Shown: positions 1,930 to 62,048 of the stretch, piece after piece
Layout: each line of letters begins with the position of its first letter
Position numbering within the stretch: the first letter of the stretch is position 1
DNA from: Diplonema japonicum
Taxonomy: Eukaryota; Protista; Euglenozoa: Diplonemea
Assembly: GCA_964019335.1 (NCBI GenBank)
Contig: OZ025760.1
Location: 141,053-205,052 of the forward strand
Direction of reading: 5' to 3'
DNA: 64,000 nt
Position numbers and translations under genes: made by a program
The notes under the pieces: generated by a model
Seen by the model: only the letters and a program-made list of their open reading frames with translations
What the model was told of the DNA's origin: nothing
The model's database searches: none

Positions 1930-2208
1930 CAACCTTACTCAAAAGAAAAACCCCAGCTGGCTGACAACGGGCATAAGAAAATATATTCTTGAATTCCTTT
2001 CTTTGTGTGAACGAAAGGGGCTGTTTGTTTGTTTATAGAAGGGGGGAGGGGGGGATGGATAAAAAAAGAGGAAAGTAATGCATGTTACACCACTCTTCTA
2101 GAACTGATATTTTACTCAGGCTGAAGCAAAGACGATGGGAAAAGAACATAAAAGGCGATGTTTAAGGGCAAATCCCACTCGAGGACCACCCTTAGGGGGG
2201 GTGGGGGT

Positions 2209-5200
2209 CTATCTCTTGATGCTTCCCTTTTGGAGCCTCGCTTTCGTTCCGATGGCGGATACCAGTGTCTTTCGCAGACGGTTGATGCGGTCCTTCTTCA
2301 GGTTGGTTTTCAGCTCTTTTAGCCTGTCCTGGGTTTCTCGTGAGGCGAAGATCGGTCTCCTTGCAAAGCCTATCGCCGCCTTCCCTCCTATTGCCATGAG
2401 GGACTTCACTCTCGTTTTGTTCTTCGCCGGGAAAGGCTTTTTCTTTCCTTGTAATGCGCACCTGTCGTTCACCTTTTGGATCAGTTTCTTGATCCTTCGC
2501 GCCTTTTCCTCCTGCGTCACTCCCAGCGATCTTCGTGTCGTCGCTTCGAAGTCTAGGGCTAACTCCACCGCCGTCACCTCCGACGTCGTGTCTTCTTTAA
2601 CCCATCTTACGTTTTGCTACTATCATCGCCAGGTACCTCTGCAACCTCTCCAGGTGTGCAAACCCGTGCCCCCTCGGCAAGATCCCGTGCAGTTCCAGGC
2701 AGAGAGGCCAGCCTGACCTGTCGCGTAGCGGTTCCAACCCGTCCCTCGCTAGCTCTTCCTGCGCAAGTGGGCATTCGTACAGCTGGTGCCGTAGCAGCGT
2801 CACTGTGTTCTGGTGTACTGCCGTGCATATGTCGCATCTATAATTCTGAGGAAGCATTGTCTCTCCGGGTGGTCTCCCGTCCTCTCTTTTCAAGTCATCA
2901 TTGTCCGGTTCTTCTTCCTCACTTGCCGGGTCGAGCGGTACGGTTTTCGGTCCCGCACTGGCGTGTGGGCTTATGTAGGGGACTGCTCCTGCTATGATCC
3001 TCCTGAACTGGTAGGCTACCACCGGATCCCTCTCCTCCTTCTACAGCCTATTCGTTTCAGGGTCAGCCCCAGCCTCGAGTCCTCGTACCGTGCTCCTTTC
3101 TTTCGTGAGGTCCCCGCATCGGGCCTTCCTCACAGCTCCCTGAAGACGTGTCCTCTTTCTGGCCATCCCATGTTCTTGCAGTCCAATCGGCTCCAGCTCC
3201 ATCCGATGTACGGCAGCCATCTTTTCAACAGGTTCCCAACCGGACCTCTCGGCATCCCCCCTTCCACGTAGCGCTCCGCTATTCTCTGCAACCTTTGTCG
3301 CAGTCCTTCCTTTTCCATGCCCTCGGATATCATTTTGAGGGACCGGTACGCCACTAATGAGGTAGGGTCGTTGGTGTGTCCCTTCAGTAGGACTGCATTC
3401 ACAGCGATAGGCGAGCGGCCACGGTGGTGGGGGCCCCATAGGCATACGGTGATCCTCGTCGTCAATTTCTTGATCGTTTCCTTATTCGGCGGCGAGAAGG
3501 GGCTCGCGTATAGGCAGGAGGGCAGTATCGACGAGCTCACAAAGTGCGCTTTGGTTTCGAAGGCCAGGTTCGTGTTCCCCAGTCTATCCAGGGACCCGAA
3601 TGCTTTGGTCGATGGGGCGATGTCGTCCCTGCTTCCATGCTCTTCAGGCTCTTTACCGTTTTGTACGGCACTGTGACCTCAACGCCCTTCCGGCTCTCCT
3701 TTCTGTTCCCCAGGACCTCGGATTTGAACCCTCTCGCCGTGCCGAAGGCTACGGTCTTCGTATCGTTCAGCTTCATGTCTGTTAGGGTGCAGAACTCCAG
3801 TGCGCCATCTATCCCTGCCTGCAGAATCGAGCGGAGCTTTGCCAGGAGGTATGCATCGTCCGCGTAGGCTACAACGTCCACCCCCGCTGCCTCCATCGTT
3901 TTGATCATCACAGAGAGCAGCGCGTTGATGATGATCACCGACAATGGGCAGCCCTGGAGGATGCCGTTGGTTGCCTCGAACGGGTCGCCCACTCCAATCG
4001 GGAACTTAAACCTCCTTGAAATCTGGTTGTACAGTGCTCTCCTTATTGGTTCTGCCAAGCCCATTGCACTCATCAGGTCCAGTGATAGTCTCTGCGGTAC
4101 CATGTCGAAGCATTTGCTGAAGTCAAGGGCTATACCTTGGAGTGGTTCTTCCTCGACTAGTGCTAGTTCCAACTTTGTACAGAGTTCCATCAGAGCTGAA
4201 GTCGTGCTGTGCTTAGGCCTGAATCCGTGCTGATTTGGCGTGATCCACCGCTCTTGCCAGCCTAGCACCTGCCTCAGTCTCGCGCTTGCCCACAGCCGGT
4301 AGATGGTGCTGGTCACCGTGATTGGCCGGTGGTTTAAAAATGCCGACCCCTCCCCTTTCCGTGTGAGCGTTACCAGGGCTGTTGTGATCTGCTCCGGCCA
4401 TTGTCCTGTTCTTTCAACGAGGTTGAAGAGATCCGCGAATCCGCTGAGGATGGGCTTCGGCAGTCGCTTCAGCTCGCTGATGCGCCATCCATCCACTCCG
4501 CACGCTCCTTTGACAGGTTTCTTCCTGATTACCTCTTTCAGGAGGTCAGCGTCTATCGCGCTCTGTGGCATTGGTTTTTCCCCGATGAAGTTTGCGTATT
4601 TCTTTCTGAACGTTTCGAATTGTGGCTCATCCTTTGGTTCCCGTGCACAGAAAATCGCTGACCACGCCTTTCGCATCACCGCGTCCATTTCCTGCAGGTT
4701 TGCCGTCACTCCCTCCTTCGTGCTCACTGCTTCCGTTTTCTGTTCCGGGCGGTCCTTCACCCACGCTGTGATGTGCTTTCGCTCGTCCACAAAGTCTGCG
4801 CGTATGGACCGCTCGTAAGCTTTTTTCTGGCACTCTTTCCGGTGGACGATGAGTTCGGATCTCTCCCCCTCGACGAAGTCCCCCGCTATGTCTAGGTTCT
4901 CCCAGATTGCATCGAAACCCTCTGTCGCATCTATCTGGCAGTATTCCACCTTGAGCGCTGCCCCCAGTTGCGAGATGTTCTTAAGGATGTTCCTCGTTTC
5001 CGTCGGCAGTGGGCCATGGTACCCCTCCTCCAGCTGAGCACGCATCCTTTCTTTCGCGATCCCGATCTTCTTTTTGATTTTCTCCAGTTGCATCTGTCTC
5101 GTCGGGATTGCCCCTCCGGTTCCTGTCCTCTCTTCTTGGCACAGAACTCAGCTGCATCCACCCAGTCTCTCTGGAGTGCCCTTCTCAGCGTCGGTGATCG

Positions 5201-49156: not shown

Positions 49157-51946
49157 TCATACCATTGAGAACTTTGGTTCACCAACTGCCCCCTCCACCT
49201 GGTGTGTTGACTCCAAGTCAGGCGCATTGCTTTCTTCAACTGACCTCTGCTCTTGCTCCACAAGGGCTTGGTTCTCCTTCTCAGCCCATTCCTCCTCCCA
49301 CTCATCCTCGTCCACTTCTTTCAGGAAAACCATGTAGATGACTGCAATGAGAACGCTGGCCCCCACGAGGAGGAAGACGCCGATGTACCAGAGGGTCCAG
49401 TCAGGCTCGAAGAGGGGGGCAAGAACGAAGGAGAACCTTGTCATGAGCTTGATGAGGATGTTGAGGGCGGGGCCGGAGGTGTCCTTGAAGGGGTCCCCGA
49501 CAGTGTCACCGCACACGGCCGCCTTGTGGCAGTCGCCTCCCTTCTCCGCGAGCTCCCCGTCCACCACCAGTTCCCCTGCTTCCACCCACTTCTTCGCGTT
49601 GTCCCATGCTCCTCCCGAGTTGCTCATTTCCACTCCCAGGAGGTAGCCTGACGAGATGGCCCCCATGAGCAGCCCCACCAGACTGTGCGACCCGAACAGG
49701 AAGCCCACGATCATCGGGGAGAAGATCGCCAGCACCCCAGGCATCAGCATCTCCTTCAGGCTCGACTTCGCGCTGATCTCGATGCACCGATCGTACTCCG
49801 GGACCACGTCCGTGTTCGTCAGGAGGTCCGGGTTCTCCACGAACTGCCTGCGCACCTCCCACATCATCTCCTGTGCCGTCTTGTTCACGCTCAGCATCGT
49901 CATCGCTGCGAACACGTAGGGGAGGAGGGCCCCGAGGAGCACCCCGCACACCACCACAGGCTGCAGGAGGTTCACCTCCTCCACTCCAGCAACACGCGCG
50001 AAGGCCACCAGCAGCGACAGGGCGCTCAGCACAGCGCTCCCGTTCGCAAACCCCTTCCCTGTCGCAGCCGTCGTGTTCCCCAAGGCGTCCAGCTTGTCGG
50101 TCGTCTCGCGCACCCACGGCGGCAGCTGCGTCATCTCAGCGATGCCCCCCGCGTTGTCCGACACAGGGCCGTACGCGTCGGTCGCCATCGTCACCCCGAG
50201 CGTCGACAGCATCCCCACGCAGGCGATTGCCGTCCCGTAGAAGCCCGCAAGGTAGTACGCCGAAAGAGCCGTCCCAGCGATGAAGAGAAGAGGGGCCGCA
50301 GTGCTGTACATACCCATCCCAAGCCCCTGGATGATCACAGGCCCGGGACCGAACTCGCTGGCCCGTGCAATGCTCCTCGTTGGCGACGAGGTGTGGGAAG
50401 TGAAGTACTCAGTCACGATCCCGATGAGGACCCCGCACAGCAGCCCAAGGGACACACACCCGAACATGCGCATCCCGGGGTTCAGCTGCCTCGCAAGTTC
50501 TCCCTCCAGGAGCTGCCTCTCTTCTGTACGGTTCGCCACAGCGTTGTCCAGACGGTCCAGTTCGGTGTCCTCACTGTTGAACAGACCCATGCTCAGGAAC
50601 AGCAGCAGAACTGTGAGGAAACCAGCAGCCCCGAACACGTTGAAGCGGAGAGCCTTCAGAAGGTCCTTCAGCTCAGCAGGTTGCCCTTGTTCCTTCATCA
50701 CCTTCACCTTTATAGTGAAGATCATGGAGACACTCAGGCCGATCATGGAGATCCAGAAGGGATAGGCCACACCCTTCTCACCGAATTCACCAGCACCCAG
50801 AACACAGGCGGCCACCAGTGCCCCGACGTAGGACTCGAAGAGGTCTGCGCCCATCCCAGCCACGTCGCCCACGTTGTCCCCAACGCAGTCCGCGATGGTT
50901 GCAGGGTTGCGGGGGCTGTCCTCAGCAAGGTCCAGGTCCACTTTTCCGCACAGGTCGGCACCTACATCGGCTGCCTTCGTGTAGATCCCACCACCCACAC
51001 GGGCGAACAGAGCCACAGCACTCGCACCGAATCCGAACCCGCCCATTGCATTCGCGTTCGAGAAACTGGCGTAGCTCAGAGCAAGGCCCCCAAGACCGCA
51101 CGACACCACTCCAAGGCCCATGCACGCCCCAGTGCGGAAGGCAATTGCAAGCCCCTTCTTCAGACCTCTATCGTGGTCGGAGTAGCAAGCGGCGGCTGTC
51201 CTGCAGTTGCCTTCTGTCGCGATGAACATGCCCATGTACCCACAGGAGGCGGAGAGGAACGCACCCATGAGGAAAGAGCAGGAGGTGGCGGGGACCCAGT
51301 CGTTCTCGCGGGCGTCGATTGCGAAGAAAAGGAAGGCCCAGAGAGCGACGACGAAGGGGAGGAGGCATGCGTACTCCATGTGGAGGAACTGCAGGGCTGC
51401 CTTGTGGATGGTCTCGGAGGCATCGCTCATCTCGTCCGTCCCACGCGGCTGTGCCATCACGTCCCACGCGTACAAAGAGACCACCACCAATCCAAGGGCA
51501 GAGGCAGCCATCGCCGCAAACACAGAAGGGTAAGGAACACTGTAAATACAGTCAGGGTTGGGGTAGATGGGCTTCTGAGGGGGGTCCAGCTGTGAGAGCT
51601 CGTAGTTCACTGTGATCTGACGCACACAGTCGGACGGGTCGTACAAGTCGAAGTGGCTCTTCCTGAAGGGCTGCAGGGCGCTGAAGTGCCGGTTCAGCAG
51701 TGCTATACGGTTGGGGGAGTACTCGTCGTATCGGGGGCTCGTGTCGTCCTCACTGTAGGCAGAGATCGACAGGGCCACCGCCACAACCGTCCAGAACAGC
51801 CAGAAGAACGCGACGAACAGTAGCCTCTTCCGGCGAGGCGGCTTGTTCTTGTTCCACGGGTCGACAGGGTCGATGTCCGACTCGTCGTAGGACTCCTCAT
51901 CATCGCCCTCTACTCGTTGTTCGTTCTCTTCGTGCACCGAACTCAT
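49157..51946 (-). CDS. Membrane-bound cation-pumping pyrophosphatase, K+-dependent type, catalytically intact
   Basis: GGGIYTKAADVGADLCGKVD, EDSPRNP, DCVGDNVGD, DAYGPVSDNAGG, LDALGNTTAA, GGAWDNAKK and GDTVGDPFKDTSGP. Start MSSVHE follows an A-run. Confidence 0.95.
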   Translation of the reverse strand: MSSVHEENEQRVEGDDEESYDESDIDPVDPWNKNKPPRRKRLLFVAFFWLFWTVVAVALSISAYSEDDTSPRYDEYSPNRIALLNRHFSALQPFRKSHFDLYDPSDCVRQITVNYELSQLDPPQKPIYPNPDCIYSVPYPSVFAAMAASALGLVVVSLYAWDVMAQPRGTDEMSDASETIHKAALQFLHMEYACLLPFVVALWAFLFFAIDARENDWVPATSCSFLMGAFLSASCGYMGMFIATEGNCRTAAACYSDHDRGLKKGLAIAFRTGACMGLGVVSCGLGGLALSYASFSNANAMGGFGFGASAVALFARVGGGIYTKAADVGADLCGKVDLDLAEDSPRNPATIADCVGDNVGDVAGMGADLFESYVGALVAACVLGAGEFGEKGVAYPFWISMIGLSVSMIFTIKVKVMKEQGQPAELKDLLKALRFNVFGAAGFLTVLLLFLSMGLFNSEDTELDRLDNAVANRTEERQLLEGELARQLNPGMRMFGCVSLGLLCGVLIGIVTEYFTSHTSSPTRSIARASEFGPGPVIIQGLGMGMYSTAAPLLFIAGTALSAYYLAGFYGTAIACVGMLSTLGVTMATDAYGPVSDNAGGIAEMTQLPPWVRETTDKLDALGNTTAATGKGFANGSAVLSALSLLVAFARVAGVEEVNLLQPVVVCGVLLGALLPYVFAAMTMLSVNKTAQEMMWEVRRQFVENPDLLTNTDVVPEYDRCIEISAKSSLKEMLMPGVLAIFSPMIVGFLFGSHSLVGLLMGAISSGYLLGVEMSNSGGAWDNAKKWVEAGELVVDGELAEKGGDCHKAAVCGDTVGDPFKDTSGPALNILIKLMTRFSFVLAPLFEPDWTLWYIGVFLLVGASVLIAVIYMVFLKEVDEDEWEEEWAEKENQALVEQEQRSVEESNAPDLESTHQVEGAVGEPKFSMV

Positions 51947-52010
51947 TTTTTCTCTTCTCTTTTTTTTTTTTTTTCTTCTTCTTTTTGTGATCACTAAGGT
52001 TTCACCTCTG

Positions 52011-52051
<41 letters not shown>

Positions 52052-52594
52052 TTTTGTTATTCTGGGGGGAAAAAAAATGATTTCTCCCTCCCCCCTTGTT
52101 TGCGTCGCGTCCATGTTGCATAATACAATACGAAAACTAGAGGGCAAAAAAATAAAAAGGGGGAGGGGAGAAGAATTGGGAGAGGGAATTAAAAAAACCA
52201 AAAAAAAAAAAAATATAGAATGCGGACACAAAGTAAAGGTTCAAAAAAAAAAAAAAGAGGCGGGGAGGGGAGGGGAGGGGGGGGGGAGGAAATGCCAAAG
52301 AAAAACACTACATTTCACAGCTTGACTTCTTCGGGGGCGTATGGGTGTGCTTTTCAAAGGCAATACCCTCTTGGATAATGGGGTGGAATGAGAGGGAGGG
52401 GGGTCAGCTTTCTTTTTTTTTCTTTTTTTTTTCTTCCTGGAAATAACGAGTCTTTGACTCGTTTTAACAAAAGGGGAATGTTGAAAAAAGTGTTTTTACG
52501 GGTTGTAAACATTCCAAGCCTCTGGGGGGGGAAACCTGGGGGAAGTTTTGTTCCCCCTATAGCACATTACAATTAACGGCCAGTTCGGTTTCCC

Positions 52595-52635
<41 letters not shown>

Positions 52636-53993
52636 GTTATCAACACCAGAGGAAGGATTTTTAATGGGAAGGCGAATCCACCACAAAGCTGAAGGGGAAA
52701 TTTACTTTTTTTTTTGGGAGGGGGGAGGACTACACGATAAACAAAGAAGGGGGGAAGAGAGGAAAAAAATAAAGAAAAAAAGAAAAAAGAAGCGGGAGAA
52801 AAGAATCAGGAAAGATAACGACGAAAAAAAAAAAATATTATAAAAAAAAAAAAAAAACAGGGAGAGAGAGGGAGAGAGTACAACGGAGATGGCATATAAA
52901 AAAAAAAGATTGATATTTCTAAAAGGGGACCAGTCTATTGGTAGTGAAACAGGAAAAAAAAAGGGGGGGAGGGGAATCAAAACGGAGAGAGTACAAGCTT
53001 GACATATAGCCAGCACGTCGAAAGACAAAATCTTAATTTTAATTTTAGCTTTCTTCTCTTGATGTTTATTCTTTTTATATATATATATATATTTTTTTTT
53101 ATACAGGCTAAGCCCACCAGAACTCAAGTAACAGATAATCCCTCTTGAGGGCAGCCATTGTGGTATAAAGTTCTTTTCTATTAATGCTTCCCAGCTTTCG
53201 TCCCTGGTGTTTAAAAAAAAAAAAAAGATGAGCATAGCCTTGTTTTTATATCATTTGTTCATTATGAATAAGAAGAAAAATACTTCATATTTTTTTATTT
53301 CCCTTTTTTTTTTTTCGATTACTGTAAAAGCGGGGGGGGAAAAAAAAAAGGAAAAAAAATGTCGGACTGAAACCCAGAAATACAACCAAAAAAAAAAAAA
53401 AATGGAGGCACTTTTTTTTTTTTGAAAAAACTTATGCCAACCCCCCCCCCCCCCCCCCCACCCCCATCACTCACTTGCTTTTTTTATTCTCTTTTTTTTT
53501 TCTCCCCTTTCTCTTTTCGATACCTTTCTCACCAATTTTCTTTCTCTTTGGTCTCTCTCAGAAAAAAAGGAGTGGGGGGGGGGGGGGGGGAGAGAGAGAG
53601 GATCTTTCTAACAAGAACCAAGGGGGGAGGGGGGGAAGGCGTGTTCACAGAGTATTTTGTAAGTTTGTATTTTTAAAAAATCAAACTAATATTTTTTTTA
53701 AAGGGAAAGGAAGAGGGAGACAGGAAGTGGGAGGGGGGACTATCTCCTTTTCGATTATCCCCCTTTACTTCAATTTCTTCCTCACCACCTTTTTTTTTTT
53801 TTTTTTTTTTTTTTTAGAGGAACTTGACAAAAAAAAAACAATATGATTAGGGGACAGGGGGGGGGGGGGGGGGGAAGAGGGAATTTTCATTTTTTTTTTT
53901 TTTTTTGTGTTACAAGTACATTTTTTTTTTCTCTTTTTTTTTTTTTTTATTCACAAAAAAAAAAATTCTTCAAAAAAAAAAAAAAAAAAAAAT

Positions 53994-56900
53994 CTAATCC
54001 TCATCCACCAAAACATTATCTCCGGGTGGAGCTTCATCTTCCTCTGTGTCCTCCTCGTCGTAATCTTTCGGTTTCTTCTCCTTGAGAACCGTGAATTCAA
54101 GCAGAATGGCCAGCAGAATCAAACAACTGACCACAATCACACCACGATCCCAAAATTCCATGTCATCCGCGAATCTCGGTGCAAGAATGAACGAGACGTA
54201 TGCCATACACTTCGACAGGATATTCAACGAGGGACCAGCGGCATCTTTCAGCGGGCTGCCGACAACCTCAGCAGTACAAAGACTGGTGTGTGATGCAGAG
54301 GTCGTGTCGTGCAGCTGTCTATTGATAACAAGCCTGCCCGATTCAATATATTTTTTCGCGGATTTTACAGCAATTCCAAAAATGGACATGAACATCCCCA
54401 AAAGGTACCCGCAAGCAATGCACGACACCAGAAACCCAACCAACGCATGAGAACCCAACCCAAACCCGACAGCAGCAGGCACGAAAAACACGATTAAAAT
54501 GGGGTAGATAACGCTTTTAACAGCCGCAGATTGAACCAGTTTCGCGAGTTTTCTATAATTGGGCCTCGTCTGCCCGTTCACAATTAACATGTCAGGGTTT
54601 TTCCGAACCTGAGCCTGAACCTCATTTACAACTCGTTTCACGGTTTTAACAACCGACATCATCGTCAGCGAGGACACGGCGAACGGTGCCAGAGCACCAA
54701 GGAAGATACCCAAAAGAACAACCGGTTTCACCACTTGAATATCGTCGATTGCAGCAACTCTTGTAAACGCGCACACCATCGCGATCGATGTGAAAGCAGC
54801 TGAGCCGTGCGACATGGATGCAGCGGTCGATGTGGCGGCAATTCCCAAAGACTCCAACGTTTCAGCGTTCTCCTTAACATATCCGGGCAAATTTGAAATA
54901 ACCGCGATCATCTTGGCATTGTGGGAAATACTGTATAAACCGGAAGTCGTAGAAGCTATCGACGATGACGTCAGCAGCCCCAACGCTGCGATGGAAATCC
55001 CGTAGAACCCTGCAAGATAGTTCGCACCGGACATCGCTCCAATAAGCGCGAGTGTTGGTACCGTAGTACAGTACATCCCCATACCAATTCCTTGAAGAAT
55101 GACAAGCGACGTCCCATACTCAGACGCCTTCGCGATGGACTGAGTCGGGTGCTCAAAATACGATGAAAAGTGTTCTGTTATCAGCTCCGATATTATCCCC
55201 GCTGTCGTTCCCAACATAACGCATCCCCATAACCTCGGGCCGGGGTAGTCCTGGTCGTCTGAAGAACCAGGACGGTCGTCAAGCGTGTTTCCAATATCGT
55301 TGAATAAACCAAGGCATAGAAGTAGTGCGATACACGCGTAAAGGATGTTTGCTACCCACATGTTTACGCGGAGATTTCTGTTGAGTTTGAAAACGGACGG
55401 TTGGGTGTTGTTTTTACCCTTCAACCCGCGGACGTACAGAGAGCAGAACGTGTTGACCCCAACAGACAACATCAACAGGTAGAACGGAAGCGCGACACCG
55501 TCGTCGCCGAACTCGCTGGCACCGAGTACCGCAGCGCTGACAAGCGCGCCTGCTGCCGAATCGAACAGATCACAACCCACTCCGATAACGCTCGACAGGT
55601 TCTGTCCTGCAATATACGTCAGCATTCCAGGATTCTTAGACGGGTACTGTGAAAACGCAACCTCTCGTTTCTCCGAAATATCTGTTCCGATTTCACCCGC
55701 TTTCGCATAGACGCTGCCTCCAATTCTCATGAATACCGTGACGACCGACCCGCCCAACGCAAATCCTGCAAGGGATACAACATTTCCGAAAATGTTGTAA
55801 ATCGATGGGATCGTCGCGCATACAGTCGCGAGCACACCGATACCCATGCATCCTGCGGCCCTGTGGATGATTTTCAAACCTCTTCGAACGCCCTTTTCAT
55901 CCGAAGAATAACACGCTGCCGCCGCTCTAGACGACCCTTCATAAGCAGCGAGACCGTTCAACAAAGCGTTCAGCAATGCGATAAGCACCCCTACGAAAAA
56001 CGACATTGCACCAGACGGCATTTCTTGCGGATTGTCTCTGTAATCCACGATTATGTAAATGAGTATCCAGACGACCCCTGTGATGACAAGGATGTAGGGG
56101 AGCATCTTTTTGATGTATTCAAGGAATTTTCTTCTGATGGTGTCCGCCGATCGAGCCATGTTGTCTGTCCCCTTCGGGCGGTACCTTATGAGAACGTGGT
56201 GAACGCATATCACAGCAAGCCCAGTGAAACCCGTGCAGATCGCTGCCATTGTGGCTGTGTATGGAATGTTGTATTCGCACGCCCAGTCGGTTGGGTACTG
56301 TTCCTTGAAGTTTGTTGTTTGTATGCACGACACAGGCTGCCCGCCTAAGAGAAAACCCTTGTCTTGAAGAAACGGGTTGTAATCTGTCCAATGTCTATTA
56401 TTCAAGGATGCTGCATTTGGATGGTAGTTATCTGTCCTTCGAAATCCGTCCTTGTCCCACTTGTACGCGAAAAAAACACAGATCAAAGCACCAAGAGACA
56501 GCTGCACGGCAACCATGACAAGGACGATCTGGTACCACGTGTACCGCTCCTTGTTCTGGTTCCACGGGTCCGAGGATTTGTTCTTTTTCCGTTTCTTCAA
56601 ATCGTTCTCGTCCTCGAACGGGCTTGCGTTGGCCCAGTCCACCACCTCCTCATTAGGATACGGCTGCGCTCCTGGATAACCCTGCTGGTCCTGCGGCTGC
56701 GGCCATTGCTGGACATGACCCGGTTGTTGCCTGAAATGACTTCCTTGCATCTGTCCATCTTGTTTATAAGGGCTTTCTTGTTTATAAGGGCTTCCTTGCG
56801 GTTGTCCCTCCTGCCTGTAAGGAACGCCATTTGGCGCGACTGGAGGTTTATTTTCCATTCCATGAGCGGTCGGGCTTCCCTGTCTTTGACTCCCGGACAT

Positions 56901-57203
56901 AGATCCTTGTCTTTGAGGATAGCCTTGTTGGCCTGCTTGTTGTGGGGGGTAGCCTTGCTGACTCGACTGCATTTGTTGTTGTGGTTGTTGGTATCTACTG
57001 GGGTACGAGGAGGGCATCTGGCTTCGCTGGCTCCCTTGGCTCGCAGGTGCGGGGGGGTATCCTTGAGGCTGTGCGCTGGTTTGGCTCCCTTGCCTTTCAG
57101 GGTAGCCCCCTTGGCTTCCTTGCCTTTCAGGGTACCCCCCTTGGCTCCCGTAGCCTGTCTGGCTTCCCGGCTTTTCGGGGTACGTAGGGTGGGAGTTGCT
57201 CAT
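53994..57203 (-). CDS. Membrane pyrophosphatase paralog with degenerate active site and Q/G/S/Y/P-rich N-terminus (putative pseudoenzyme)
   Basis: Uninterrupted 1069-aa ORF collinear with the neighbouring PPase across the TM helices. The catalytic acidic motifs are substituted. Confidence 0.88.
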   Translation of the reverse strand: MSNSHPTYPEKPGSQTGYGSQGGYPERQGSQGGYPERQGSQTSAQPQGYPPAPASQGSQRSQMPSSYPSRYQQPQQQMQSSQQGYPPQQAGQQGYPQRQGSMSGSQRQGSPTAHGMENKPPVAPNGVPYRQEGQPQGSPYKQESPYKQDGQMQGSHFRQQPGHVQQWPQPQDQQGYPGAQPYPNEEVVDWANASPFEDENDLKKRKKNKSSDPWNQNKERYTWYQIVLVMVAVQLSLGALICVFFAYKWDKDGFRRTDNYHPNAASLNNRHWTDYNPFLQDKGFLLGGQPVSCIQTTNFKEQYPTDWACEYNIPYTATMAAICTGFTGLAVICVHHVLIRYRPKGTDNMARSADTIRRKFLEYIKKMLPYILVITGVVWILIYIIVDYRDNPQEMPSGAMSFFVGVLIALLNALLNGLAAYEGSSRAAAACYSSDEKGVRRGLKIIHRAAGCMGIGVLATVCATIPSIYNIFGNVVSLAGFALGGSVVTVFMRIGGSVYAKAGEIGTDISEKREVAFSQYPSKNPGMLTYIAGQNLSSVIGVGCDLFDSAAGALVSAAVLGASEFGDDGVALPFYLLMLSVGVNTFCSLYVRGLKGKNNTQPSVFKLNRNLRVNMWVANILYACIALLLCLGLFNDIGNTLDDRPGSSDDQDYPGPRLWGCVMLGTTAGIISELITEHFSSYFEHPTQSIAKASEYGTSLVILQGIGMGMYCTTVPTLALIGAMSGANYLAGFYGISIAALGLLTSSSIASTTSGLYSISHNAKMIAVISNLPGYVKENAETLESLGIAATSTAASMSHGSAAFTSIAMVCAFTRVAAIDDIQVVKPVVLLGIFLGALAPFAVSSLTMMSVVKTVKRVVNEVQAQVRKNPDMLIVNGQTRPNYRKLAKLVQSAAVKSVIYPILIVFFVPAAVGFGLGSHALVGFLVSCIACGYLLGMFMSIFGIAVKSAKKYIESGRLVINRQLHDTTSASHTSLCTAEVVGSPLKDAAGPSLNILSKCMAYVSFILAPRFADDMEFWDRGVIVVSCLILLAILLEFTVLKEKKPKDYDEEDTEEDEAPPGDNVLVDED

Positions 57204-57245
57204 TTTCTTTTGAGAGAGAGTGTGAATAAAGAAATTAAATCAAAT

Positions 57246-57282
<37 letters not shown>

Positions 57283-57839
57283 TGCCCACACGCACGCGAG
57301 ACTGTAAAACAAGAGGCACACGGGGAGGGATGCAAAAAAAAAGGGGGGGAGGGGAGGGGAGGGGGAATGAGTAGAGCACCTACGTTCCCTCGCCTGTTTG
57401 GTGTGTTGTGTGTTTTTTTTATTGAGCCCCCTCGTTACGCAATATATAAAAAAGAATGGAATGAAAAAAGAAGAATAAAGGGGGGGGGGAAGAAAAAGGA
57501 TGGTGGGAAAAAAAAAAACAAATGAAAAAAAATAGTAATAACTAGTAGAAGGAGCGGAGAACGGGGGAGGCGGGGGCGTTTTTTTTATTTCTCTTTTTGA
57601 CCTGGGCTCCTTCAGTGCTTTTTTTTGGGGGGGGGATACACTGGTTTTTCTCTTTCTGGGGTAGAACTCATACTACAACGGTTTCCCCTCAAACTACTGT
57701 TTTTTTTTTTTTTTTTTTAAAACGCGCGAGTGGGTGTAAAAGGCAACAATTTTACAACTGGCTGAAAAGAATAAATAAAAAAAAGGTGTCTTTGAAGGGA
57801 ACCTGCAGTATGTGACAGGATCGCCTAACGACAATCAAC

Positions 57840-60800
57840 TCATCTAGTGTTTGATCCCTTCTGTCGTGGTAGTGCCTTAGGCCCGTCGTAGTATCTCATC
57901 AGCAGCTTGGGCGTGAAACCAACTAGCGAGTTGTTGAGGATGCAATGCGTTCGCATTTGTTCCTCTAGGATCGAGTGGGTGACCTTCGGGGACGCGAAGA
58001 TCGGACGAGTGGAGTATCCAGTGACGGCATGGCTGTGGAGCCCTAGGGTGCGTAGTGAGTGTACTGACTTCATAGTTTTTGCCGGAATCAGATGATTCCC
58101 CGTCCCTTTTAGATGGATCCTTTCTAAGACGCTGAGAATCCTGCCGAGCTTTCTCGCCCAGCATGCTATGTCTTCACCACCCATGTGGAGCCTTTCCGTT
58201 GCAATGAGGTCGACCGCCAGTTCCGCTTTAGAAACTTGCCCGCCGTCCTCGCCCCATTTTAGGGCCTTTAACCAGTTGAGGACAAATGGGATTAGGCCTG
58301 GGAAGTATTTCTTCTGCAGCCCATGCTCGTGGTACCAAGGGAGAGGTTTCGGGGTTAAGAGGTTCCCCGGTCGGAATGGTCTATTCCAGAAATGCTGTTT
58401 GGAGTACCTGACCTGCTTGTCGGCGTGCAAGTTCTCGAGCTTGCCTGCCACTTCTGCTAGCATCAGGTGGAGCTCCTTGACCCTCGATAGGCTGATGTCC
58501 AAGTCCGAGGTAATGATGCCGTGTACGCGGGTGCAGATTGGCCAGTTGATGTGCTCTTGCACCAGCCATTCGCGGTCGGCGTTGGCCGTTCTAAAACCGG
58601 TGTGTGCCGGGCAGTGCCAAATTGTATGCTGCAGGAGGTCGCTGGTCCCGCCCCTAATGTCGAAGGGTGCGTCACACCCAAGGCATTTCGTTCGCGTGCC
58701 ATCCATGTCGCCGTAGGCTCTAGGGTGCAGTGGAAGGATGGCGCCAGTAACGGCACAGAGGATTCTCCTCGCTTTCTGCGGGTTGGTGATCGCCACCTCG
58801 TTGTGTAGGACGTTCGTCTTCCTCTCGTCCACTCCTGTTTCGATTCCTTTGAAAGTGTCCCGCTCTTCGGCGAGCTCGCCCCGCAGTTTTTCTTTCAACC
58901 GCGCCCTGACCTCGTGTTTCAGGTGTGGCATGCCCCGTGGCAACTCCTTTACGAAGTCCTTCCATCTCGTCCCGATTTCACGCAGCCATATTTCTGCATT
59001 GCCAAATGGTCCTTTCGAAAGTGACGGCGTTCCATCTCGCTCCTTTGCGTACTTGTAAGTTTCCCAGCCCGACACGAATAGGGACTTGTTCGACTGTCGT
59101 GTGCACAGGCGACCTAGGGTCGAAATGGCTTTATAGACCACCGAAGAGTAAGGGTCTAGGGTGTGTCCTTTGTAGGCAATCCCTAGCAGTGCACTGGCGG
59201 AACGCATCGGGTTGCGTGCACCCCAGATGCATGACGTGATTTGCTTCTTCATCTTCACCAGCCAAGAGTCTGGGATTGGGTCGAAGAGGACGCCGTAGAA
59301 GGCGGACGGTAGGATGTTCTCTGCGATGATCTGTACCTTGCGGTTGTGGTAAAGTCTCGTTGCTGCGAGGCGCTCGATTTCTGCAATTGCCTTGCGGGCT
59401 CTCGTGTTCTCTCTTCTACAAGGCTGGAAATAGACCAGTACCCCTAGGATCTGTAGTTTGCAGGACGTGTCGAAGGTCTCCCCGTGCAGCTGTACGTTGC
59501 CGCAGTACTTGGGCTTCGTTCCAAACGACTTAGTTTTCTTCGGGTGGATAGTCATCCCTGTGAGCTTGCAGAGGGTGCCAAGCAGGTTAACGGAGCGTTG
59601 CACCGCGGCCTCCGAGGTAGCTGACGTGAAGTTTAGGTCGTCTGCATACGACACAGGATGGGCGTTTCTAGGGTTCGCCGTGCATTTCTTGGTGAATATA
59701 GCGAGGATCGCGTTGATGAAGACCGGTGATATTGGACAACCCTGGAGAATTCCATTCGTGGTTCTGAACGGTGCGCCCACCCCCATAGGGAAACGCAAAC
59801 GACGAATTAGGTCTGAGTAGATGGATTTTATCGGTCTCAGGATAAGTTGGCTGAGGCCTAAACGCTCCACTAAATCGAACGTAAGCGCATGGGGGATCGA
59901 GTCGAAGCATTTCTTGAAGTCAACCGAGAGGCCATAGAGGTGCTTACCTGATATTTTCGCCGTCTCTACACTAGTGCAGACTCGGGCGAGGAGATCGTCA
60001 GTGCTGTGTTTCGGCCTGAAACCGAATTGGAGAGGGGTGATCCACGCCTCTTGCCACTCGAGGATCGCGGGTAGTCTAGCGCCTGCCCAGAGTCGGTAGA
60101 ACGCACTCGATACCGTGATCGGGCGGTGTTCCAGCGGTTCTTCGGACTCCCCTTTCGGGATCATCGTTACAAGCGCCGTGAGGACTGCCTTGGGCCATCG
60201 TCCCCCTTCCTCTATCCATTCGTACAGATAGACGAAACCCTCCAGTAGTGCGTCTGGTAAATGTGCGAGTTCACAAAGCCTCCAACCGTCGATCCCTGCA
60301 CACTCCTGCTTCTCCTTTTTTTTCAGGACTACCCGTAGATCGTCCAGAGTGAGCGAGAGGTCCACCATCGGGTGGTGGGAGATCTGCGTCCCAAACGCTT
60401 CTTCAAAAGAGTCGTAGCGCGGTTCGGGATGTTCTTCGTATTTGCGAAAGATGTGGCGCCACGCCGACCTGAAAGCTAGGTCGATCTCTTCAACTGAGGT
60501 CGAGATGGCTCCGTTGGTGTTTGCTGCTACCAGCTCTCTCTCGGGCCTATCTGCTACGAACTGCATGATTGCGCTCCGATTCACCGAGAAGCCTGAATTT
60601 AGCTCCCTCCGTGCTTTTATACTGCGCTGGATCTTCGAGGCAATGTCCATGTCCCGTTGTAATGCTGTCACCTTCCTCTTCACCAGGTCCGCCTCCCTGG
60701 AGATGTTGCCATGGGAAAAAGTCTCAGGGTGAACCTTTAAGACATTGATGGCTCTCGCCTTCATCTTGTCCCACCCTTTACGTAGGTCATAGGGCAGGGC

Positions 60801-62048
60801 AGGGTCTTTCAACATCTGAACTCTCCGTAAAATGGCGGATGCACTTTTTCGGATTTTCTCGAGGGTTAAGTATTTCTTGGATACGGCACCAAAGCTGTTC
60901 TCCGTGGATGGGGCTGCGGTCCTCCGCAAGCTGGGTGAGTTTACTTCGCCTCTGCCTGAGAAAATCGAGTTTCCCAATTGTGTAGTCCCCCTCAAGAGGT
61001 GTTTTTCACAAGTTGTAGAGAGCGCTAAGAAAGCGGCGTCTAGATCTCCGGTGTCCTTCAGGGCCCTCAAAGTTGGGAGAATATCACTGTGCGGTGTACG
61101 GTCTCGGGAGTCCCGGAGAGGGATGATCATCCTGGGCAGATGGTATTGGAGCGAGGGCTCGTGGAATTTTGGGATATCAATCGAGATTTTAAGTGCGTGG
61201 TGGGAGGGGACGCCGATGTCGAAGGTCTGGCAGTCTCTTAGAGCCATCGACGCCGTTGCGTTCATCAGGATGTAGTCTGGCCTGGTTTTCGCCGTTGCCG
61301 TGACGAAGGAGGGAGGGGTCTGTGTACCACGTAGGCGTGAGACCTTGTCCGAGGCGTCTGTCCAATGCTGTGCAAGGGCGTGCGAAAGCACCGGGGAGTC
61401 CTGAATGGTAGTATTAAAATCTCCCGTTACGATGACCGGAACGTCCCCCAGTTGCGTAGTTTTCCGTAGTGTGTCGTCAATCAGTGCTTCCCTGTTTCTT
61501 TTGGCGTGATTACTGCCGTCGTTAACCTGGCAGTAGAGGGTGATGACGTGTAACCAATCCCGTTTCCCCACTGCGACTCTTACGTGAACTCTGCGTGTGT
61601 TGGTGCCGTGGTCTTCGAAAAGAGAAGTCTCCTTCCTCGCAGTCAGCCGCTTGTTCACAATAATTCCCACTCCTCCTCTTTGGGCGATCGAGGGGGACTC
61701 AGCATCCTTGGATATCTTCCCCTGTTGCGGGGGTCCCCAGAAGAGACGGTGTTCTTTCAGGAAAGCGTCACGTTTTGTTTCTTCGTTCACCATCCACTGA
61801 CCAGCTTGCGTTAGAGCCGTCTCCTGGAGGCAGATCAAGTCAAATGATTGTAGTTTGATCCTATTCAGATGGTTCGGGAGGTTCGTGACGTTCACCGAAA
61901 TAAGAGAGAGCTCCCTCTTGTTCTCCACTTCGGGTCCAGGATTCGGATGGATGTCACCGTGGGTCATGAGTCGTTTTCTCGCTTCGCGCGCGATAGATCG
62001 TTTCGACCTCTTCAAAATGAGGAAATGTGCCCGTGGAAGGTGGATCAT
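57840..62048 (-). CDS. Element B ORF2: 2A-like peptide, APE endonuclease, reverse transcriptase, CCHC knuckle
   Basis: GDIHPNPGP; CLQET, TGDFN, TRPDYI, PSHHAL; HRPITV, QFGFR, DFKKCFD, ILQGCPISP, YADDL; CLGC...HTIWHC. Confidence 0.95.
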   Translation of the reverse strand: MIHLPRAHFLILKRSKRSIAREARKRLMTHGDIHPNPGPEVENKRELSLISVNVTNLPNHLNRIKLQSFDLICLQETALTQAGQWMVNEETKRDAFLKEHRLFWGPPQQGKISKDAESPSIAQRGGVGIIVNKRLTARKETSLFEDHGTNTRRVHVRVAVGKRDWLHVITLYCQVNDGSNHAKRNREALIDDTLRKTTQLGDVPVIVTGDFNTTIQDSPVLSHALAQHWTDASDKVSRLRGTQTPPSFVTATAKTRPDYILMNATASMALRDCQTFDIGVPSHHALKISIDIPKFHEPSLQYHLPRMIIPLRDSRDRTPHSDILPTLRALKDTGDLDAAFLALSTTCEKHLLRGTTQLGNSIFSGRGEVNSPSLRRTAAPSTENSFGAVSKKYLTLEKIRKSASAILRRVQMLKDPALPYDLRKGWDKMKARAINVLKVHPETFSHGNISREADLVKRKVTALQRDMDIASKIQRSIKARRELNSGFSVNRSAIMQFVADRPERELVAANTNGAISTSVEEIDLAFRSAWRHIFRKYEEHPEPRYDSFEEAFGTQISHHPMVDLSLTLDDLRVVLKKKEKQECAGIDGWRLCELAHLPDALLEGFVYLYEWIEEGGRWPKAVLTALVTMIPKGESEEPLEHRPITVSSAFYRLWAGARLPAILEWQEAWITPLQFGFRPKHSTDDLLARVCTSVETAKISGKHLYGLSVDFKKCFDSIPHALTFDLVERLGLSQLILRPIKSIYSDLIRRLRFPMGVGAPFRTTNGILQGCPISPVFINAILAIFTKKCTANPRNAHPVSYADDLNFTSATSEAAVQRSVNLLGTLCKLTGMTIHPKKTKSFGTKPKYCGNVQLHGETFDTSCKLQILGVLVYFQPCRRENTRARKAIAEIERLAATRLYHNRKVQIIAENILPSAFYGVLFDPIPDSWLVKMKKQITSCIWGARNPMRSASALLGIAYKGHTLDPYSSVVYKAISTLGRLCTRQSNKSLFVSGWETYKYAKERDGTPSLSKGPFGNAEIWLREIGTRWKDFVKELPRGMPHLKHEVRARLKEKLRGELAEERDTFKGIETGVDERKTNVLHNEVAITNPQKARRILCAVTGAILPLHPRAYGDMDGTRTKCLGCDAPFDIRGGTSDLLQHTIWHCPAHTGFRTANADREWLVQEHINWPICTRVHGIITSDLDISLSRVKELHLMLAEVAGKLENLHADKQVRYSKQHFWNRPFRPGNLLTPKPLPWYHEHGLQKKYFPGLIPFVLNWLKALKWGEDGGQVSKAELAVDLIATERLHMGGEDIACWARKLGRILSVLERIHLKGTGNHLIPAKTMKSVHSLRTLGLHSHAVTGYSTRPIFASPKVTHSILEEQMRTHCILNNSLVGFTPKLLMRYYDGPKALPRQKGSNTR

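Follow-up and report, generated by a model that had tools for sequence, protein, structure and literature searches.

Why would a genome keep, beside the gene for a working pyrophosphate-driven ion pump, a full-length sister gene that has lost the residues that split pyrophosphate? The marine protist Diplonema japonicum poses this question in a 64,000 bp window (contig OZ025760.1 of GCA_964019335.1, positions 141,053 to 205,052, forward strand; all coordinates below refer to this window). A first-pass annotation of the sequence noted an active membrane pyrophosphatase (M-PPase) beside a catalytically dead twin with surviving ion-gate residues. It proposed a selected pseudo-PPase acting as a regulatory heterodimer subunit, a scaffold or an uncoupled ion conduit. 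Here we describe the structural features of the twin and evaluate these proposals. The observation itself was confirmed, whereas the interpretation was supported only in part.

Two tandem membrane pyrophosphatase genes

The two genes lie in tandem on the same strand, at the positions first annotated. The first (49157-51946, minus strand) encodes a canonical K+-dependent, Na+-type M-PPase of 929 aa, in which all 29 key catalytic, gate and K+-site positions are canonical. It matches Pfam PF03030 with 774 bits. Its start is the Met at 51946 and not the TTG at 52231, as the EukProt D. japonicum transcript protein P0284 is identical over 928 of 928 residues from that Met. An AT-rich intergenic spacer with long homopolymer runs (52232-53993) follows, over which contig cover is low or patchy. 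The second gene, the twin (53994-57203, minus strand), is an intronless ORF of 1069 codons. The probability that a frame of this length would be open by chance is about 5e-23.

The twin matches PF03030 with 371 bits (cut-off 29.7) over profile positions 3-644 of 645, and matches Vigna radiata PPase chains with an E value of 1.6e-63. BLASTP gives 35% identity between the two proteins over 892 residues, which include a shared N-terminal extension. Each pair of active and twin motifs contrasted in the first-pass annotation is present in this alignment. The PF03030 domain (54186-56222, minus strand; residues 328-1006) is predicted to adopt the 16-helix M-PPase fold. The AF2 model has a pLDDT of 88.9 and a pTM of 0.90, and Foldseek target-normalised TM-scores are 0.86-0.87 (rmsd about 3 A) to chains of the Thermotoga maritima K+-dependent Na+-pumping enzyme (PDB 4AV3 and 5LZQ) and the Vigna H+-PPase (4A01).

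The twin also has additional segments compared to these solved structures. A predicted extra transmembrane helix, TM0 (56457-56537, minus strand; residues 223-249), precedes the canonical 16 helices and is followed by a small lumenal domain (residues 250-314). TM0 is shared with the active diplonemid PPases. A further predicted helix at the C-terminal end, TM17 (54090-54161, minus strand; residues 1015-1038), is followed by an acidic cytosolic tail. The low-complexity segment of roughly 190 aa had been described as a tail, which is misleading because it is the N-terminus (56634-57203, minus strand; residues 1-190). It consists of 23% Q, 15% P, 14% G, 12% S and 7% Y, contains six GYP motifs and is predicted to be disordered and cytosolic.

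Loss of acidic ligands and retention of gate residues

When mapped to Vigna numbering the changes in the twin are D253E, E268Q, D269Y, D279Y, D283Q, D287S, D500S, D507H, D527E, D530E, N534I, D691K, D723E and D727S. The residues R242, K250, D257, K261, N273, D294, S298, N508, K694, K730, D731, N738 and K742 are kept, and position 297 (6.53) is Asp instead of Glu. Of 15 invariant acidic Mg/PPi ligands only D257 and D731 remain; four are Asp to Glu and nine are non-acidic. The general base (Asp 6.43, D287) is Ser. In contrast, all four PPi-contacting lysines (K250, K261, K694 and K730) are kept. The ion gate, as defined in PMC10897367, consists of R242, D294 (6.50), E 6.53/6.57, S298 (6.54), N738 (16.46) and K742 (16.50). 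Five of the six are identical in the twin and the sixth is the Glu to Asp change at 6.53, an acidic residue at this position being found in Na+-type enzymes.

The contrast is visible in two regions. In TM5, loop 5-6 and TM6 (55554-55733, minus strand; residues 491-550) the gate residues R493 (R242), D545 (D294), D548 (position 6.53) and S549 are kept, while the Mg ligands D253, D269, D279, D283 and D287 are replaced. At 54210-54275 (minus strand) a degenerate TM16 motif (D723E and D727S, with K730 and D731 kept) is followed by gate residues N994 and K998 (N738 and K742).

The twin retains 48% of all columns that are invariant in the active diplonemid enzymes, and against that background the acidic ligands are lost more often than expected (2/15 kept, p=0.006) while gate residues plus lysines are kept more often than expected (9/10, p=0.007). 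A direct comparison of gate and acidic positions gives a Fisher p of 0.0055. The claim that the gate residues survive while the catalytic acidic residues are gone therefore holds statistically. Gate residues are buried charged residues, however, and could be kept for folding alone.

One could argue that the twin is still a working pyrophosphatase or pump that uses migrated or alternative catalytic residues. K250, D257, K261, K694, K730 and D731 remain, four changes are Asp to Glu, and some annotated pseudoenzymes have later proved active (PMC10211241). On the other hand, nine acidic ligands are non-acidic, the general base is Ser and D691 is Lys, and the 29 positions are invariant in about 30 active enzymes from bacteria to diplonemids. 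We consider this reading very unlikely, although the lack of activity in the twin, like the activity of its neighbor, is inferred from sequence alone. It is in this sense that we refer to these proteins as dead or active.

Transcription, selection and related paralogs

Decay of a duplicate would be expected to leave neither expression nor purifying selection, and both had been named beforehand as tests. The exact 1069-aa protein is present (P0399) with EukProt as its source, and the EukProt D. japonicum set consists of Trinity transcripts. This evidence concerns transcription, not protein. Contigs of 3.3 kb from two sequencing runs of the same strain stop at 54007 and 57236, but these points lie just inside homopolymer runs and do not distinguish RNA from DNA, and were not used as evidence of expression.

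A related lineage, seen in two other runs, carries a copy that is 91-98% identical in nucleotides. Of 34 listed ORF differences, out of more than 100, 30 are synonymous and four conservative (pN/pS about 0.04, binomial p 1e-15). These differences fall in two stretches of the transmembrane core covering 197 codons (residues 614-672 and 920-1056). The dead motifs around residues 943-951 and 977-987 are unchanged, as is the protein sequence of the TM16 region, and the indels in the N-terminal low-complexity region are in frame (15 and 45 nt). The test rests on one related lineage, because the two runs share almost all differences, and the RNA status of those runs is only a guess.

A decaying duplicate whose frame happens to be open is suggested by the very long branch of the twin, its average codon bias, and the lack of any ortholog above 37% identity in the protein searches. 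The last point is uninformative, as the twin's own cluster is represented by an unrelated 53-aa fragment and the searches could not have seen close orthologs. A metagenome scan returned only a 34% identical relative. The length of the open frame, the pN/pS and the presence of the exact protein in a transcriptome set contradict decay, which we regard as all but excluded.

The twin is not unique. Six more dead paralogs were identified: KAJ9452290 and KAJ9468941 of D. papillatum, EP01062_P062465 and EP01062_P007984 of Namystynia, EP01065_P032693 of Artemidia (the last two genera from transcriptomes), and a second D. japonicum copy on another contig. In these diplonemid-clade PPases 14-23 of the 29 key positions are changed while R242, D294 (Asp or Glu), position 297 (Glu or Asp) and K742 are kept. 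Arg242 and Lys742 are invariant in all seven dead paralogs. Pooled, gate residues are kept in 32/42 cells versus 21/105 for acidic ligands. The replacement residues differ among the copies, and the hemistasiid copies have also lost the lysines (0/4).

Whether any of these is the ortholog of the twin is unresolved. The twin joins KAJ9452290 in one quick tree, the C113-type active genes in another, and all dead copies in a FastTree analysis. AU tests on the best trees obtained reject none of the three placements (with KAJ9452290, p 0.54-0.63; with the C113-type active genes, p 0.25-0.29; all dead copies as one clade, p 0.18 for the better of two constrained trees). A further D. japonicum copy was considered as an example of a decaying PPase, but this was rejected because it looks like an intron-containing gene of the K+-independent type.

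Possible roles and comparison with known systems

The analysis shows that the twin is a transcribed member of the M-PPase family held under purifying selection, with a predicted intact 16-helix core plus the diplonemid-specific TM0 and TM17, a dismantled acidic Mg/PPi cage, and preserved lysines and Arg-Asp-Asp/Glu-Ser-Lys gate. It belongs to a so far undescribed set of dead M-PPase paralogs found across Diplonemea. The core inference of the first-pass annotation, a selected pseudo-PPase rather than a decaying duplicate, is thus well supported. What remains inference is the absence of hydrolysis and ion pumping, dimerisation, and any role as partner subunit, conduit or scaffold.

Our preferred reading is that the twin still dimerises through helices 10, 13 and 15 and works as a non-hydrolysing partner of active PPase subunits. 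M-PPases are obligate dimers whose interface is formed by these helices and for which half-of-the-sites coupling is documented (PMC10897367), so that a one-site heterodimer would alter PPi kinetics or ion coupling. The GYP-rich cytosolic N-terminus would add a docking or regulatory handle. The only indirect support for dimerisation comes from the helices, as TM10 and TM15 are the best retained and TM11, TM12 and TM14 are among the worst; the same-strand tandem position next to an active copy also speaks for this reading. However, TM13 is only averagely retained, and there is no direct evidence of dimerisation, of heterodimers or of any effect on the active enzyme. GC3 is 0.56 for the twin versus 0.78 for its active neighbor, which suggests much lower expression than the eight active genes, in which case at most a minority of dimers could be mixed. 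We give this reading as a whole a probability of about 0.5; we are highly confident that the twin is a maintained non-catalytic paralog, but the heterodimer mechanism is tentative and rather less likely than not.

Alternatively, the twin may be a homodimeric, non-enzymatic ion conduit or ligand sensor. The former active site has turned from acidic to basic (four lysines kept, plus D691K and D507H) and in this view would bind an anion such as PPi, polyphosphate or an inositol pyrophosphate without Mg and without hydrolysis, and so gate or simply allow H+/Na+ movement through the preserved gate. The retention of gate residues and lysines, the invariance of R242 and K742 and the predicted intact fold are in agreement with this. 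Loss of the lysines in the hemistasiid paralogs implies that anion binding is not a family-wide feature, the coupling-funnel residue D287 is lost, and there are no functional data; we consider this role doubtful.

A membrane scaffold or trafficking adaptor is less likely still. Here the PPase body would serve only as an anchor in the acidocalcisome or vacuole membrane, and the function would lie in the GYP/Q-rich N-terminus and the acidic C-tail. The 190-aa N-terminus is unique to the twin and stays in frame in the related lineage, and other dead paralogs also carry long N-terminal additions (the proteins listed as P0128, P0185 and P0206 are 1106-1182 aa). However, purifying selection was measured in the transmembrane core and not in this region, and an anchor-only role would not explain the selective retention of gate residues.

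Literature searches for pseudo or inactive M-PPases found no description of such a protein, and none is mentioned in the papers searched, which included reviews of pseudoenzymes (PMC5106787, PMC10211241). The twin shares the PF03030 match, predicted fold, gate residues and lysines of the Thermotoga and Vigna enzymes, but with 13 of 15 acidic ligands changed it cannot be filed as an active member. Heterodimeric ABC exporters with one degenerate nucleotide-binding site offer an analogy: one catalytic site is dead and serves a structural or regulatory role while the partner site turns over. Their fold and energy source are unrelated, and for the twin pairing with an active subunit is only inferred. 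The iRhoms and Derlins, pseudoproteases of the rhomboid family, are polytopic membrane pseudoenzymes kept by selection, often with added cytosolic N-terminal domains, that reuse the fold for a non-catalytic function, although both family and function are different.

M-PPases are treated as uniformly active homodimeric pumps, and are drug targets in protist parasites. How the two subunits communicate is an open mechanistic question. A naturally maintained subunit that lacks the residues for hydrolysis but has kept those of the gate is an evolutionary "mutant" with which to ask what the gate and the dimer interface do without catalysis, and whether mixed dimers exist. It is possible, though we think it unlikely, that diplonemids use natural asymmetric dimers in which hydrolysis in a live subunit drives or gates ion passage through, or regulation by, a dead one with an intact gate. 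This would be a natural test of the half-of-the-sites and inter-subunit coupling model, and dead M-PPases would then form an ancient, family-wide class that also occurs outside diplonemids. D. papillatum can be transformed, and tagging and knockout of its dead paralogs should be feasible. The results also flag an annotation problem, as at least the two D. papillatum proteins are named putative sodium pumps in NCBI although they lack the catalytic residues. Degenerate homologs also appear in other eukaryotic and prokaryote-sized sequences.

The membrane pyrophosphatase genes of the D. japonicum assembly

Two same-strand open reading frames (ORFs) with homology to the membrane pyrophosphatases (M-PPases) lie 1.76 kb apart in the window. 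The downstream one, at 49157-51946 (-), scores 774 bits on the Pfam profile PF03030 and is the active copy. Its initiating Met was fixed by a EukProt D. japonicum transcript protein, P0284, which is identical to it at 928/928 residues from the Met at 51946. However, P0284 is 939 aa in length against 929 aa in the genomic ORF, and the mRNA therefore differs at the extreme 3' end of the coding region (window 49157-49170), through a small terminal intron or a variant. The upstream ORF, at 53994-57203 (-), has 1069 codons and is referred to here as the twin. It scores 371 bits over profile positions 3-644 of 645. The two proteins are 35% identical over 892 residues, and the alignment includes a pre-domain segment with an extra transmembrane helix and a Cys-containing lumenal stretch.

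A PF03030 inventory of the 62.5-Mb, 132-contig assembly identified seven tandem active genes on contig C50, the active gene of the window on contig C113, the twin, and two further loci. The first of these is a gene in four pieces on contig C26 (about 590.5-592.8 kb; about 2015-4333 (-) of locus L014). It looks like a K+-independent-type PPase (Lys at 12.46, Thr at 12.49) split over four reading frames with gaps of 26-50 nt, which are probably micro-introns. Its catalytic motifs are intact, but the TM16 gate position K742 reads Thr. The second is another, more degraded PPase-like ORF on C50 (about 382.6-384.7 kb; 2082-4184 (-) of locus L013), with 618 aa from its likely Met and a PF03030 score of 106 bits. 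It still has R242, D294, E297, S298 and K742 but lacks the block that carries D691, K694 and D723. In trees it sits with the C50 array genes on a very long branch.

Residue changes and predicted fold of the twin

Residues were numbered with the HMMER alignment to Vigna PPase chains and were audited in two MAFFT alignments. Twenty-nine catalytic, gate and K+-site positions are invariant in about 30 active enzymes from Dehalococcoidia to diplonemids. The twin changes 16 of them: D253E, E268Q, D269Y, D279Y, D283Q, D287S (the general base), D500S, D507H, D527E, D530E, N534I, A537T, D691K, D723E, D727S, and Glu to Asp at 6.53. It keeps R242, K250, D257, K261, N273, D294, S298, N508, K694, K730, D731, N738 and K742. 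By class, 2/15 acidic ligands, 4/4 lysines and 5/6 gate residues are kept, with the gate defined as D6.50, E6.53/57, S6.54, D/N16.46 and K16.50 (PMC10897367). The twin retains 48% of the 316 columns that are invariant in the active diplonemid PPases. Against that background the acidic ligands are depleted (p=0.006), the gate residues plus lysines are enriched (p=0.007), and the comparison of gate with acidic positions gives a Fisher p of 0.0055. Residual activity of the twin is considered very unlikely.

The first-pass annotation had described an active M-PPase beside a full-length twin that lost most Mg/PPi-binding Asp residues but kept the ion gate, and this sequence observation is correct in every motif. 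The one descriptive error concerns the Q/P/G/S/Y-rich stretch of 190 residues, which had been called a tail but is N-terminal.

An AlphaFold2 model of residues 191-1069, built with a 41-sequence alignment, has a pLDDT of 88.9 and a pTM of 0.90. Foldseek places the TmPPase and VrPPase chains on top, with a target-normalised TM-score of 0.86-0.87 and an rmsd of about 3 A. The model adds a helix TM0 (residues 223-249), a small lumenal domain, and a C-terminal TM17. This would place the low-complexity N-terminus and the acidic C-tail in the cytosol, a topology that is inferred from the canonical enzyme. A role as a scaffold acting through the GYP-rich segment was also considered, but is thought unlikely.

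Maintenance of the twin and degenerate relatives

The chance of an open frame of 1069 codons is about 5e-23. Contigs of four public sequencing runs were compared over window positions 52250-57830. Runs of the same organism carry the ORF without differences, whereas two runs labelled as other organisms (X1 and X2) carry short contigs with 2-9% nucleotide differences along the ORF. Of the 34 differences listed inside the ORF, which come from the best-supported rows only, 30 are synonymous third-position changes and 4 are conservative (Ile/Val twice, Ala/Thr and Thr/Ser). This gives a pS of 0.22, a pN of 0.009 and a pN/pS of 0.04 (binomial p 1e-15). Because X1 and X2 share nearly all differences they represent one lineage, and the assignment of such runs to RNA is only a guess. 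The degenerate motifs at residues 943-951 and 977-987 are unchanged at the protein level, so the dead state predates that split. Indels in the low-complexity part are 15 and 45 nt and in frame.

In addition, the exact 1069-aa sequence is present in the protein collection with EukProt as its source, and the D. japonicum set there is a Trinity transcriptome. The gene is therefore transcribed full length and without introns. Protein searches never returned the twin or any close ortholog, but this silence is not evidence, because the 90% cluster that holds the twin (that of P0399/P0400) is represented by an unrelated 53-aa fragment, and length-filtered searches cannot return the twin or its close kin. 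The reading of the twin as a decaying duplicate is hardly tenable.

The twin is not a one-off. Among the best hits are further diplonemid proteins with 14-23 of the 29 positions changed: KAJ9452290 and KAJ9468941 of D. papillatum, both named putative sodium pumps in NCBI, two Trinity transcripts of Namystynia karyoxenos, one Trinity transcript of Artemidia motanka, and the second D. japonicum copy on C50. All seven, the twin included, keep R242 and K742. D294 is Asp in six and Glu in one, position 297 is Glu or Asp in all, and position 298 is Ser or Thr in all. Pooled, gate residues are kept in 32/42 cells against 21/105 for the acidic ligands, although these cells are not independent. In protein P0206 of Namystynia, a sub-threshold EF-hand match (23.6 bits against a cut-off of 30) at residues 528-576 lies in the stretch ahead of the main PF03030 match (residues 633-1143) and is a weak hint of Ca2+ sensing.

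All diplonemid PPases, live and dead, form one clade with full support. However, the placement of the long dead branches is unstable, and AU tests reject none of three placements (the twin with KAJ9452290, the twin with the C113-type active genes, or all dead copies together), so that one ancient loss cannot be told from several. Degenerate homologs also appear outside the diplonemid clade (proteins P0164, P0196, P0204, P0211, P0256, P0159 and P0232). These M-PPase homologs, some of prokaryotic size (665-685 aa), have many catalytic positions replaced while mostly keeping R242 and D294. Dead M-PPases may thus be more widespread than diplonemids.

Possible mechanism and genomic setting

The analysis establishes an intact predicted fold, a dismantled Mg/PPi cage, a retained gate and retained lysines, purifying selection, and transcription. 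The absence of PPi hydrolysis, any dimerization and any ion transport by the twin are inferred, as is the mechanism considered here. The interpretation in the first-pass annotation, a selected pseudo-PPase acting as a regulatory heterodimer subunit, scaffold or uncoupled ion conduit, is partly supported, in that selection is borne out whereas the proposed roles rest on inference.

M-PPases are dimers whose interface is made of helices 10, 13 and 15, and they show half-of-the-sites reactivity (PMC10897367). When retention in the twin was normalised by the conservation among active enzymes, TM10 and TM15 were the best-kept helices (0.64 each). TM11, TM12 and TM14 were among the worst (0.33, 0.31 and 0.22; TM2 is 0.25), and TM13 was average (0.43). 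This pattern, together with the tandem position, makes a non-hydrolysing dimer partner our preferred model, with a probability of about 0.4. The main argument against a stoichiometric partner is codon bias, as GC3 is 0.56 for the twin against 0.78 for the neighbouring active gene, and there are eight active genes. A homodimeric conduit or anion sensor is a more doubtful alternative. The pocket turns basic through D691K and D507H with the lysines kept, but the hemistasiid copies lost the lysines.

Full-text searches, and consultation of two recent PPase reviews and a mechanistic paper, found no mention of inactive, pseudo- or heterodimeric M-PPases in the literature that was searchable, which excludes most subscription journals. 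The pump family itself is well known, and the finding is read as a pseudoenzyme branch within it.

Directly upstream of the twin, window 57840-62048 (-) contains a 1402-aa ORF with endonuclease/exonuclease/phosphatase and reverse-transcriptase domains, that is, a non-LTR retrotransposon. Its flanks give very high contig depth in all runs, so it is a repeat. Of the 21 ORFs of at least 300 aa in the window (1-64000), 16 are on the minus strand, and four of the five plus-strand ORFs merely overlap longer minus-strand ORFs. Spacers rich in long A or T runs separate the genes, an arrangement that looks polycistronic.
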